Sequence record: NC_021529.2
Reading direction: 5' to 3' (one strand)
Length of the DNA stretch: 64,000 nt
Below the pieces are notes generated by a model, which was not told where the DNA came from, searched no databases, and saw nothing but the letters and a program-made list of their open reading frames with translations. How positions within the stretch are numbered: the first letter of the stretch is position 1; every line of letters starts with the position of its first letter. A program made the translations under genes and the position numbers. This document shows positions 17,391 through 39,424 of this stretch, piece after piece.

Positions 17391-17567
17391 ATGATTTCAA
17401 CATTCGCTGCTATACTAATAGCTGTCATGCTACTCGTGCTGTCAGTCAATGAGTTCGAAAACTTTCTAGAAGATGACATCCGCGCTTATCTAATCATTGC
17501 AGCAACTGCTCTTGCAATTACTAATGCATACGCTGTATTCATACTAGAACACCATCTCATACCATAA
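17391..17567 (+). CDS. Two-TM microprotein (58 aa)
   Basis: Read by hand: MISTFAAILIAVMLLVLSVNEFENFLEDDIRAYLIIAATALAITNAYAVFILEHHLIP; AGGA SD. Confidence 0.65.
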   Translation: MISTFAAILIAVMLLVLSVNEFENFLEDDIRAYLIIAATALAITNAYAVFILEHHLIP

Positions 17568-17576
17568 GGATAGACA

Positions 17577-17771
17577 ATGACTGTAATCATACTATTTCAA
17601 ATGAGTATATTCGCACTGCTGTTGATGATACTCGTTAATGACAATAACAAATTCCTAGCAGATGGTGTCAAAGAAATACTACTCGTGTCTGCTATCACTA
17701 TATGTCTGATCAACGCTTTCTTTATCAGTCAATACGCAAGCATGTATAACATGCTAATGGAGAATCTATGA
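17577..17771 (+). CDS. Two-TM microprotein (64 aa)
   Basis: Two hydrophobic helices; AGGA SD. Confidence 0.65.
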   Translation: MTVIILFQMSIFALLLMILVNDNNKFLADGVKEILLVSAITICLINAFFISQYASMYNMLMENL

Positions 17772-17929
17772 GCTTACTAACTATGATAACGCTGTTCGTC
17801 GTGCTATCAATCGCAACAGCATCTATCGCTATCAGCTTTATCAACAACCCAGGCTTCATTAAACTAACGCTTTTCGCTGTGCTAGGCTTTATCGCTTATG
17901 TGCTAATGAATGTAATAGTCGCATCATGA
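17768..17929 (+). CDS. Two-TM microprotein (53 aa)
   Basis: Read by hand: MSLLTMITLFVVLSIATASIAISFINNPGFIKLTLFAVLGFIAYVLMNVIVAS; ATGA overlaps. Confidence 0.65.
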   Translation: MSLLTMITLFVVLSIATASIAISFINNPGFIKLTLFAVLGFIAYVLMNVIVAS

Positions 17930-18015
17930 GTGATATACCAATCAATTACATCATGCTTCTGCTATGCGTTCTAGCAGGTGTAGCTGGATGGTGCTTGAGC
18001 GATATCAGCAAATGA
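17926..18015 (+). CDS. Single-TM microprotein (29 aa)
   Basis: Read by hand: MSDIPINYIMLLLCVLAGVAGWCLSDISK; ATGA overlap. Confidence 0.5.
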   Translation: MSDIPINYIMLLLCVLAGVAGWCLSDISK

Positions 18016-18034
18016 AAACTATATAAGGCAAACT

Positions 18035-18214
18035 ATGTTTATTATCTCAATCTCTATCTTTCTATCTGCAATCTATCTAATATGGACAGATAATAGTACA
18101 GATAACCTAGAAAGAGTATTAGCGCAAGTGATACTGCTAATGGCAGCAGCAATCAACTGCGTCGCTCAATGGGCTCTAAGCGACATTCTATCAGTAACGA
18201 TGACTATATCATGA
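18035..18214 (+). CDS. Two-TM microprotein (59 aa)
   Basis: Read by hand: MFIISISIFLSAIYLIWTDNSTDNLERVLAQVILLMAAAINCVAQWALSDILSVTMTIS. Confidence 0.6.
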   Translation: MFIISISIFLSAIYLIWTDNSTDNLERVLAQVILLMAAAINCVAQWALSDILSVTMTIS

Positions 18215-18327
18215 TGTACCGCAAAAACGCTTAGAATACCACACAGACACGCTCAGAGCATAGGACAATACTCATTACCATACTCATTGTTTTTGATATA
18301 TCGCACCCCGGTTCGTTTTCTACAACA

Positions 18328-18436
18328 TGTGGGTAAATCTGTGGATAATATGTGGGTGAGATTGTGCATAAGTGTCTGAGATATGTGGATAAAAACAGAA
18401 ATCAATTGTGGATAAGTCTGTGGATTACGTGGATAA
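18328..18436 (-). repeat. Array of 8 co-oriented DnaA-box-like 9-mers
   Basis: + strand TGTGGGTAA 18328, TGTGGATAA 18340, TGTGGGTGA 18351, TGTGCATAA 18363, TGTGGATAA 18384, TGTGGATAA 18407, TGTGGATTA 18419, CGTGGATAA 18428 (reverse complement of TTATCCACA), in a 370-bp intergenic gap. Confidence 0.85.
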
Positions 18437-18584
18437 GTTTTTTGGCTAAAAATAGCAAAAGGCTCATCGGGAGTGGTGGGAATCGCATTTGAACGAATGT
18501 GGTAAAGAACTTACACCATTTCTGAAAAATAATTTGACACCGCTTGCGCTTATGTGAGAAGATAGCGCGGTGAGAGGAGAGAAT

Positions 18585-19115
18585 ATGAAACAACTGATAT
18601 TAAAAGAGCGCATGAGTTTGCGAGTGGTAGACCAAGAGCAAGTGCATAGAGTGCCTTACCATACTCTGCGACATGAGAATCGAACTGGTTTGCCGTTTAA
18701 TGTCGAGTGCAAAGGTGATGGTTGTGTTATGTGTTCGCATGTTGACGGTTTGATTGCAGCACAGAAAGGTTCAGAGGCGTTTCATTTACGAGCTAAAGTG
18801 CGATACCAAGTGCGAGTAATCGACTTGAATGATGTATCGAGTGGTGTACAGATGTTGTGTTTTGGTCGCTCGTTGATTGAAGCCGTGACTGATGCGCTTG
18901 AGGGTTCAAACGAGCGTGAGTATCGACCACTTGAGATACGTTCATCTGACTTTGCTCATGGGTTTCGTAGTTACAGAGATTCATTTGCTGGTGATGTTAT
19001 TCGTACAGCAATTAAGATGAAATTCAAGCCAACTGATGAGTACAAGTTACCGTTTTACATTACGCCGTATGATGCTGATGCAATTCTGCGACATTTATTG
19101 AAGGGGTTAACATGA
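18585..19115 (+). CDS. gp32-like Zn-binding ssDNA-binding-fold protein (truncated, no acidic tail)
   Basis: H-x15-C-x4-C-x2-C, then RAKVRYQVRVIDL...VQMLCFGRSLIEAV, recalling the gp32 core; strong GAGAGGAG SD. Confidence 0.5.
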   Translation: MKQLILKERMSLRVVDQEQVHRVPYHTLRHENRTGLPFNVECKGDGCVMCSHVDGLIAAQKGSEAFHLRAKVRYQVRVIDLNDVSSGVQMLCFGRSLIEAVTDALEGSNEREYRPLEIRSSDFAHGFRSYRDSFAGDVIRTAIKMKFKPTDEYKLPFYITPYDADAILRHLLKGLT

Positions 19116-38740: not shown

Positions 38741-39424
38741 ATGTTTGATTTACTGTTTAACATCAACCACACTGTGTTTTCAATAGGCGATTATGCAGTA
38801 TCTGGTCTAGAACTTTGGGCTACAATCACTGGCTTGGTATGTGTCATCATGGCGCGTATGAACATGAAGCACAACTTCACAGTCGGCATTGTAAACTGTA
38901 TCGGATTTGCGATTCTGTTCTTTCAGATTCAGCTATACAGCGACGTGCTCTTGCAGGGATTCTTCATTGCAGCAAGTGCATACGGGTTCTATCAGTGGAA
39001 TAAGAAAGACGACGATGAAGTCCTCATTCAATATATGACACCGCTAAGCACGTTCCTTGCTATCAGCTTGACTGCTATCGCAACATACGCACTTACCCAC
39101 AGCATTGACACGATAATGTGGATAAGTGGCAACATTCTTGTGGATAACTATGAACATATCCCAGCAGCACTATCTGGATTAGATGCATTCACAACGTGTG
39201 CGAGTATCATGGCGTTCATGCTGATGATTCAGCGTAAAGTCGAAGCGTGGCTGTTCTGGGTAGCAGTAAACGTCGTGTGTATCTACAACTACAGTGCACA
39301 AGGTGTTATCGTAGTCGCAGTCGAGTACTGTATCTTCCTAATGAACGCTATGTTAGCGGTATTAACGTGGCATCGTGAAGCATCACAAAACAAGTTGATG
39401 CTCGAATTGAAAGAGCAATGGTGA
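38741..39424 (+). CDS. pnuC: Nicotinamide riboside transporter PnuC
   Basis: ELWATITGLVCV, QLYSDVLLQGFF...YGFYQW, LDAFTTCASI...RKVEAWLFWVAVNVV. Confidence 0.88.
   Translation: MFDLLFNINHTVFSIGDYAVSGLELWATITGLVCVIMARMNMKHNFTVGIVNCIGFAILFFQIQLYSDVLLQGFFIAASAYGFYQWNKKDDDEVLIQYMTPLSTFLAISLTAIATYALTHSIDTIMWISGNILVDNYEHIPAALSGLDAFTTCASIMAFMLMIQRKVEAWLFWVAVNVVCIYNYSAQGVIVVAVEYCIFLMNAMLAVLTWHREASQNKLMLELKEQW
39093..39147. repeat. Intragenic DnaA-box mini-cluster in pnuC
   Basis: TTACCCACA 39093, TGTGGATAA 39117, TGTGGATAA 39139. Confidence 0.55.

Follow-up and report, generated by a model that had tools for sequence, protein, structure and literature searches.

A conserved array of eight DnaA boxes in Vibrio phage nt-1 and its KVP40-like relatives, a probable landing pad for the host initiator DnaA

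Large arrays of DnaA boxes in phages are already known from the T5-like phages. Heusterspreute, in 1987, and Davison are the names reportedly connected with the array in the injection-stop (iss) region of T5. In T5-like phages this conserved untranslated region holds about eight boxes, in pairs 3 bp apart (bioRxiv 10.1101/866236). In this paper we describe an array of eight DnaA boxes in a non-coding gap of Vibrio phage nt-1, a KVP40-like phage of Vibrio natriegens, and compare it with the described systems. Replication that is independent of the host initiator has its textbook example in the T4-type phages, and we know of no use of DnaA in T4-type replication. The DnaA boxes of plasmids and of phage P1 are typically parts of origins. 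Our comparisons suggest that the nt-1 array is probably a cis-acting landing pad for the host initiator DnaA.

The window analysed here, 64,000 bp in length, corresponds to bases 1-64000 of nt-1 (HQ317393.2, 247,511 bp; Straboviridae, Mylasvirus), so the T4-like and KVP40-like label that an initial annotation had given to it from the letters alone was right. The array lies in a run of + strand genes of the early region, in a gap of 370 bp between the annotated coding sequences (CDSs) of open reading frame (ORF) ORF036, which ends at 18214, and ORF037, which starts at 18585. This gap had been described as one of the largest; over the 14.5-22.5 kb section in which we tested it, it is the largest among the 25 CDSs. 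The array spans 109 bp and consists of eight co-oriented 9-mers which all resemble TTATCCACA on the - strand (table 1). Three boxes match perfectly, four differ by one mismatch (among them the box that fits TTATNCACA) and the remaining box differs by two. The boxes, their common orientation and their mismatch classes were all found where the initial annotation had placed them, as were the start-to-start spacings of 12, 11, 12, 21, 23, 12 and 9 bp. The gaps between neighbouring boxes are 3 bp (B1-B2, B3-B4 and B6-B7), 2 bp (B2-B3) and 0 bp (B7-B8), and an abutting arrangement like that of B7 and B8 is also seen in bacterial DnaA-box clusters. Part of the array is built from a 23-nt unit of two boxes that is present three times (repeat family starts at 18324, 18347 and 18403). 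The number of boxes that fit the high-affinity consensus TTATNCACA is four of the eight in nt-1 and seven of the eight in VH7D.

The array is far beyond chance. By chance alone the whole 247.5-kb genome should contain about 2.2-2.8 perfect boxes, or about 0.6-0.7 per window, which bears out the earlier estimate of less than one. Seven are observed, three of them in the array and two paired inside pnuC. When up to one mismatch is allowed, the largest same-strand cluster within 110 bp has 7 boxes in nt-1, compared to at most 3 in 200 Markov-simulated genomes. The motif TTWTNCACA shows no enrichment over the whole genome (26 observed, 27 expected), and therefore the signal is one of local clustering and not of composition.

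Positional conservation among relatives, which the initial annotation had proposed as a check on its reading, is found. The array occurs with the same spacing in nine phages, namely nt-1, CZ01, VS1, QD01, phi-Grn1, VH7D, phi-ST2, ValKK3 and XZ1, and blastn finds it also in VS2, Va3, R10Z, R11Z and PVA23. When box position 5 is set aside, 59 of the 64 box columns are invariant in the nine phages and the pairwise identity is 0.96. Position 5, the N of TTATNCACA, has a pairwise identity of 0.74 with C, G, A and T all occurring, and it drifts at the rate of the spacers inside the array (16 of 37 columns invariant, pairwise identity 0.745). As these nine phages stand for no more than three or four independent lineages, the counts overstate independence, but the pattern is consistent within each lineage. 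We observe here purifying selection on exactly the positions that are read by DnaA, and the footprint is the one that would be expected of a reader with the specificity TT(A/T)TNCACA. The distance between the pairs varies, from 21 to 20 bp in VS1 and QD01 and with a different layout in F86, but the pairs as such persist. F86, a distant phage, has five rearranged boxes in the homologous gap and retains the B6-B7-B8 triple. It is also the only one with an inverted box; in nt-1 and its eight relatives all boxes are co-oriented.

Host DnaA is very likely the reader of the array, because of the DnaA-like conservation footprint, the spacing of the double boxes and the lack of a phage homologue of DnaA. 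With the same high confidence we expect that Vibrio DnaA would occupy the array in infected cells. The DnaA of Vibrio presumably has the same specificity as that of E. coli. Chromatin immunoprecipitation sequencing in E. coli has found DnaA in vivo almost only on box pairs that are 2 or 3 bp apart, and a single bp added to the gap of a double box abolishes binding (PMC11317965). The gaps of 3, 2, 3 and 3 bp in the array agree with this rule. A DnaA-like reader encoded by the phage itself was rejected after all six-frame ORFs had been searched by phmmer with E. coli DnaA and with its domain IV (best E-value 0.68). The annotated replisome of nt-1 comprises gp43, gp45, gp44/62, gp41, gp61, gp59 and gp32.

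Table 1. Positions of the DnaA boxes and of the surrounding features in the nt-1 window
Feature	Position	Strand	Description
Whole DnaA-box array	18328..18436	-	Same spacing in 9 phages
Box B1	18328..18336	-	TTACCCACA, 1 mismatch; TTATGCACA or TTATACACA in relatives
Box B2	18340..18348	-	TTATCCACA, perfect; double box with B1; invariant in 9/9 array-bearing phages
Box B3	18351..18359	-	TCACCCACA, 2 mismatches; weak, in phase
Box B4	18363..18371	-	TTATGCACA, fits TTATNCACA; invariant in 9 phages
Box B5	18384..18392	-	TTATCCACA, perfect; solitary, 21 bp from B4 and 23 bp to B6; TTATACACA in the ValKK3/VH7D group
Box B6	18407..18415	-	TTATCCACA, perfect; opens the B6-B7-B8 triple module (12 + 9 bp), also in the distant phage F86
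Box B7	18419..18427	-	TAATCCACA, 1 mismatch; perfect in the ValKK3/VH7D group
Box B8	18428..18436	-	TTATCCACG, 1 mismatch; abuts B7; perfect in the ValKK3/VH7D group
Upstream framework block	18224..18261	+	AAAACGCTTAGAAT ... CTCAGAGCAT; kept in all relatives including box-less KVP40; unique in genome
Least stable duplex segment of the gap	18260..18300		Top 1.3% of the genome's 40-nt windows
Conserved block just upstream of B1	18290..18319	+	TTTTTGATATATCGCACC..CGTTT; kept in KVP40 and F86
Downstream framework block	18437..18482	+	..AAAAAT.G....CTCATCGG..; kept in all relatives including KVP40
Hypervariable segment	18483..18508		Lineage-specific short tandem repeats; between downstream block and promoter -35
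Predicted sigma-70-type promoter	18534..18563	+	TTGACA, 18-nt spacer, TG-extended GAAGAT; would drive ORF037 and genes beyond
ORF037	18585..19115	+	First gene downstream; only in nt-1 and CZ01; 0 Pfam or PHROG matches

The signature GTCTGTGGATNANGTGGATAA is also found in 113 bacterial contigs from many phyla, against about 4 by chance as estimated from the size of the collection, and the median number of boxes within 300 bp at these sites is 5. Some of the sites are coding coincidences, since about half fall in long open frames. They cannot in general be chromosomal origins next to dnaA, as just 4 of the 113 are. In three Lachnospiraceae (Coprococcus, Anaerostipes and Agathobacter) an abutting double or triple module is found just upstream of a gene of the DnaD/DnaB family (PF07261), which suggests that DnaA may control a replication-initiation gene of this family there.

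Readings of the array as coding or structured sequence were rejected. On the + strand each box carries a TAA, and the phase of 11-12 nt brings stops into all three frames. On the - strand the ORFs are split in nt-1, and VS1 and QD01 have a 1-nt indel. CDSs are annotated on this strand over the array in QD01 (QD01_174) and in F86; their frame is not kept in relatives and they are probably spurious. A structured RNA is not indicated either, with 0 Rfam matches in the window and an RNAalifold energy of -13 kcal/mol over 196 nt in which the covariation term is unfavourable.

The closest precedent of the nt-1 array is the array of about eight boxes in T5-like phages. Both occur in virulent phages with their own replication genes, and both have about eight consensus or near-consensus boxes, with pairs 3 bp apart, in a conserved non-coding region. 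In both cases DnaA binding and function are hypothetical. The boxes of T5 form four pairs in two large inverted repeats within the terminal repeat, whereas those of nt-1 are co-oriented within 109 bp and have no such repeats; the only inverted repeats in 18200-18600 are one weak 16-nt pair away from the boxes and a palindrome of 10 nt at the end of ORF036. There is no relationship between the two groups of phages, and the proposed injection stop at the membrane is not transferable from T5 to a permuted T4-type genome. Our literature search found no paper that links DnaA boxes with KVP40-like phages. The initial annotation had known of no description in these phages and stands in that respect, but arrays on the scale of eight or nine boxes do exist in T5-like phages and in uncultivated phage contigs. 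Perfect double boxes are common in uncultivated viral contigs (more than 118 matches), and 8 of the 118 matches listed have six or more co-oriented boxes. Among them are unrelated IMG/VR phage contigs with 6-9 co-oriented boxes in a phase of about 11-12 nt beside a GC-rich palindrome. In several of these, where the flanks were checked, the arrays lie between a gene of the GP88 family (PF17338) and a gene for a small AT-hook protein, and one of the contigs has a primase-helicase gene about 3 kb away. These contigs may represent a third phage group with a large DnaA-box array.

Among bacterial loci, E. coli datA is a functional model for a DnaA sink and, like the nt-1 array, has several strong DnaA boxes outside an origin, which could accommodate many DnaA molecules. 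datA requires an integration host factor (IHF) site between its boxes and promotes hydrolysis of the ATP bound to DnaA, whereas the nt-1 array has no IHF consensus and no sequence homology to datA. The phage copy is also amplified, so any effect would come from copy number. We found 0 matches to the IHF consensus WATCAANNNNTTR in the gap of nt-1, VH7D, VS1 and KVP40, and the array can thus not be called datA-like, as initially suggested, by the feature that defines datA. The left half of E. coli oriC (R1, R5M, tau2, I1 and I2) is similar in its co-oriented boxes, its phase of about 11 bp and its AT-rich sequence 5' of the strand that reads TGTGGATAA. But oriC combines few strong sites with many weak ATP-dependent ones and has 13-mer repeats in its DNA unwinding element (DUE), 11 GATC sites, an IHF site and an opposed right half. 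The boxes of nt-1 are mostly strong and come without GATC, IHF site or opposed half. GATC occurs 0 times in 18215-18584, where 1.2 are expected from the genome average. On either side of 18.4 kb the GC skew has a positive sign and tracks the direction of transcription, a test of low power for T4-type replication. The oriC-like reading is therefore weakened, with no GATC cluster, IHF site, opposed sub-arrays or skew switch, and just a modest AT-rich segment on the expected side. The core of a DnaA-reactivating sequence (DARS) has three boxes, of which I and II are in opposite orientation, in contrast to the co-oriented boxes of nt-1 and its eight relatives. Since the gap lacks an IHF consensus site, a GATC cluster and a switch in skew, the array does not appear to be a member of the datA, DARS or oriC types.

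The remaining described systems share single features with the array. P1 oriR, RK2 oriV, F and pSC101 recruit host DnaA by several strong boxes, with flanking iterons for the Rep protein of the element. Their boxes flank the Rep iterons beside the rep gene, whereas no rep-like gene or second repeat family was found in nt-1; the gene of the binder adjoins the iterons in such origins, and ORF037, which adjoins the nt-1 array, is absent from most array-bearing phages. The double boxes of the E. coli DnaA regulon (Stringer, Fitzgerald and Wade 2024, PMC11317965) are pairs with 2-3 bp between them, as are B1-B2, B2-B3, B3-B4 and B6-B7. A regulon site is one pair beside a promoter, while the eight boxes of nt-1 lie upstream of the nearest promoter by about 100 bp. 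The iterons of T4 oriE, which are associated with an early promoter, are likewise evenly spaced direct repeats of a T4-type phage and recur about every 12 nt. There is no homology or synteny between oriE (the gene 5 and repEA-repEB region) and the nt-1 locus, and we rejected a relationship as the oriE iterons are 24-nt repeats that code for the beta-helix of gene 5 and have no DnaA boxes.

KVP40 has kept both flanking blocks and the downstream promoter, and all eight boxes are gone. In its 128-nt centre (126 nt in VH7D) there is no box within one mismatch. The centre is not a foreign replacement, as its length is the same and its homology to the array can still be detected (z = 5, 0/500 shuffles). 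Active removal of the boxes is not supported either. The identity between KVP40 and VH7D is 47% in box columns and 55% in spacer columns (P = 0.56), compared to 78% in the flanks. This looks like a long-relaxed constraint and not like targeted removal. The array has not been relocated either, as the whole KVP40 genome has no perfect box, cluster or double box. As a side observation, the 0 perfect boxes of KVP40 compare with 2.0 expected and its 45 near-boxes with 61 expected (P = 0.02), which is a weak hint that DnaA sites might be avoided in a lineage without the array. Phages of the D484 type have a decayed copy of the array, and 1.081.O has 0 boxes at the locus. The array is accessory, because it was lost in KVP40 without a cluster elsewhere, is decayed in D484 and is absent in 1.081.O. 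The likeliest history is that of an old array that was lost several times, because F86, the most distant relative, has boxes.

Among the functions we considered for the array, a DnaA sink that scales with copy number is the single most likely option, and we put it forward tentatively. The array would be a DNA decoy whose capacity rises with the number of phage genome copies. One entering genome would provide 8 sites, and 100 or more replicated genomes would provide strong sites of the order of a thousand, comparable to the whole DnaA pool of a cell, as judged from E. coli. DnaA would be pulled off the host oriC1 and off DnaA-repressed promoters (dnaA, nrdAB). New rounds of host replication would then stop and the nucleotide supply would shift to the phage, which itself replicates by its own DnaA-independent T4-type replisome. 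This would be an accessory advantage and not an essential step, so that loss would be possible in lineages such as KVP40. We favour the sink because the boxes are mostly of the strong TTATNCACA class, because the pairs and not the distances between them stay fixed across deep divergence, because none of the extra elements of origins, datA or DARS was found (a sink would need no DUE repeats, IHF site or GATC cluster), and because an uncompensated loss as in KVP40 suits an accessory trait of host manipulation.

Several points weigh against a sink. The weak box B3 is kept in phase, for which a pure sink has no account. The single orientation of all boxes is left over as well, although tandem duplication of the 23-nt unit could explain it. 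Nor does a sink account for a framework around the array that is conserved even where the boxes were lost. Titration would set in only once the phage DNA has been amplified; by then the host may be doomed anyway, and host forks that are already running would not be halted. The catalytic mechanism of datA is unsupported, as there is no IHF site. As for the initial annotation, it had named an array absent or unconstrained in relatives as something that would refute its reading, and this is partly the case. KVP40 and its close relatives have lost all boxes, D484 has a decayed array and 1.081.O has none, while in the nine phages the array is constrained.

The boxes are embedded in a framework of 345 bp that is unique in the genome and conserved across the phage group. 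Its blocks are not a generic promoter or terminator element that is repeated, as they occur only once in the genome. The upstream block and its homologues contain repeated motifs of the type CTCA(G/C)AG, doubled as CAGAAGCTCT x2 in D484, and an element CGCTTAGAAT in this block resembles CGCTTGACA of the downstream promoter. The upstream block may thus be a second protein-binding site or a degenerate copy of the promoter. The least stable segment of the gap, at 18260-18300, is on the same side as the DUE of E. coli relative to the orientation of R1. A tandem duplication of 12 nt at 18265-18288 (ACAATACTCATT / ACCATACTCATT) lengthens this AT-rich segment; it is specific to nt-1 and absent from nine other aligned phages including the close relative CZ01. 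The promoter has an equivalent site in VH7D and KVP40, with 10/12 matches and the TG extension. The second hexamer of the nt-1 copy falls below the threshold of the promoter scan and was hence not listed by it, and attempts to define a genome-wide promoter class around this site failed. The repeats of the hypervariable segment include GAACATCGAA x2 in CZ01 and GAACAGCCAA x2 in D484. This segment is also where the GenBank records of three relatives (PVA23, PVA8 and PC-Liy1) and, on the opposite strand, of two more (R10Z and R11Z) end, 29 bp apart and about 70-100 bp downstream of the array. The ends of PVA23 are raw SOAPdenovo contig ends. These record ends could reflect repeat heterogeneity or an assembly artefact, low coverage, or a physical DNA end or nick. 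They go with the framework and not with the boxes, because PVA8 and PC-Liy1 are of the box-less type.

Two alternatives to the sink make use of this surrounding sequence, and we regard both as unlikely. In one, a DnaA oligomer on the boxes would open the segment at 18260-18300 or stabilise an R-loop there for the first rounds of replication, as an accessory origin that is redundant and can be lost. T4 has multiple origins that differ from one another and can each be dispensed with, and in oriE direct repeats are combined with an early promoter (PMC3016281); multiple dispensable origins would explain the loss in KVP40. The co-oriented boxes in 11-12-bp phase resemble the left half of oriC, in which R1 and R5M read TGTGGATAA with the DUE 5' of them. 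The gap's least stable duplex (top 1.3% of genome windows) is on the DUE-equivalent side, and the location in a large, unique and conserved non-coding region would also suit an origin. Against an origin, this AT-rich segment is weaker than the DUE of E. coli (-45.3 vs -41.7 kcal/mol per 40 steps) and is partly the duplication found only in nt-1. Moreover, the gap has no 13-mer-type repeats, GATC or IHF consensus site, the boxes have a single orientation with no opposed sub-array, and the distances between pairs differ among lineages. The unchanged GC skew at 18.4 kb counts little here, being uninformative for recombination-driven replication, but the flanks kept in box-less KVP40 indicate that the framework has a role independent of the boxes. 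The other alternative is control of transcription. DnaA on the array would be a roadblock or insulator to read-through from ORF030-036, or would modulate the strong promoter about 100 bp downstream, so that expression of the next early gene block would be coupled to the DnaA status of the host. We looked for a terminator between the upstream genes and the array and found none, and the array thus has a terminator-less + strand gene block on one side and the conserved TTGACA-18-TG-extended promoter on the other. Double boxes are what DnaA uses in its established role as a transcription factor, and the same module is found just upstream of the DnaD/DnaB-family genes in the three Lachnospiraceae. 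Work from Messer's laboratory is said to have found that complexes of DnaA with its boxes can stop RNA polymerase during elongation, depending on their orientation. Known regulatory sites use far fewer than eight boxes, however, and relative to the genes downstream the boxes of nt-1 point the opposite way from those in the bacterial promoter examples. Between B8 and the -35 there are about 98-111 bp, a distance that differs among lineages, which argues against a fixed contact geometry, and KVP40 has the promoter and the flanks without any box.

The boxes might also only resemble DnaA boxes and be iterons that are read by a protein of the phage itself, for example a regulator, an initiator or the small subunit of a terminase. 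Most ORFs, both neighbouring and genome-wide, have no assigned function, and a phage protein that acts with direct repeats has been proposed for T4 oriE. The record ends of relatives about 70-100 bp downstream could hint at a packaging-related site, but such breakpoints also occur in box-less phages of the KVP40 type. We consider iterons of this kind very improbable, since the DnaA consensus is matched exactly, including the free position 5 and the pair spacing of 2-3 bp, an identical module exists in bacteria of several phyla, and no homologue of DnaA domain IV is encoded in the six frames. In addition, the array co-varies with no gene, as ORF037 is limited to nt-1 and CZ01, and ORF038 and ORF039 are also in KVP40. 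The least probable function is a structural or anchoring role as proposed for T5, in which DnaA, being largely membrane-associated, would tether the genome or aid its entry, the initiation of packaging or condensation. The membrane-DnaA tether has been put forward for T5-like phages, whose conserved untranslated region holds about as many boxes, paired at a distance of 3 bp (bioRxiv 10.1101/866236). The clustering of the record ends beside the array would be in line with anchoring, yet the breakpoints track the framework and not the boxes, the large inverted repeats of the T5 iss region are missing, and the T5 model is itself a hypothesis. The genomes of T4-type phages are taken to be circularly permuted. 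With such a genome no fixed end enters first.

The neighbouring genes have no recognisable function. ORF037 cannot be a partner of the array because it is present in nt-1 and CZ01 only, and in VS1, QD01, VH7D and KVP40 the promoter is directly followed by the ORF038 homologue. We found no match to a Rep or helix-turn-helix family, and no informative family, among the flanking ORFs. Upstream of the gap, at 17391-18214, there are the small ORFs ORF032-036. Four of these five were translated and are 53-64 aa long; ORF035 is shorter. With their strongly hydrophobic translations they resemble a tandem family of small membrane proteins. The second cluster of boxes in nt-1 is inside pnuC (38741-39424), at 39093-39147, and has two perfect co-oriented boxes at 39117 and 39139, 22 bp apart, and an inverted box with one mismatch at 39093. 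By a rough estimate the chance of such a cluster is about 0.002. It is not a conserved site, as neither ValKK3 nor D482, the closest relatives compared, have kept it at the DNA or the amino-acid level, and it seems to be specific to the nt-1 lineage.

Our results show that three or four vibriophage lineages hold a DnaA-type array under selection as tight as that on the active site of a protein. It is possible, though we think it somewhat doubtful, that virulent phages with their own replisome repeatedly evolve non-coding DnaA "DNA sponges", and that the arrays of KVP40-like phages, of the T5-like iss region and next to GP88 genes are convergent. If so, a decoy that needs no protein would gain strength as the phage genome is copied, shutting down initiation on the host chromosome and derepressing the DnaA regulon. 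The host Vibrio natriegens is tractable and non-pathogenic, and natural controls exist in KVP40, in which all boxes are eroded, and in F86 with its rearranged array. A decoy would be a device for host takeover made of DNA alone, with its dose set by phage replication, and would offer an explanation for T5's DnaA boxes, which have long been without one. In a bolder variant, DnaA on the array may set an R-loop or unwinding site and thereby form an origin in a T4-type phage that depends on the host initiator. This would add a host-initiator-dependent mode to T4-type replication.

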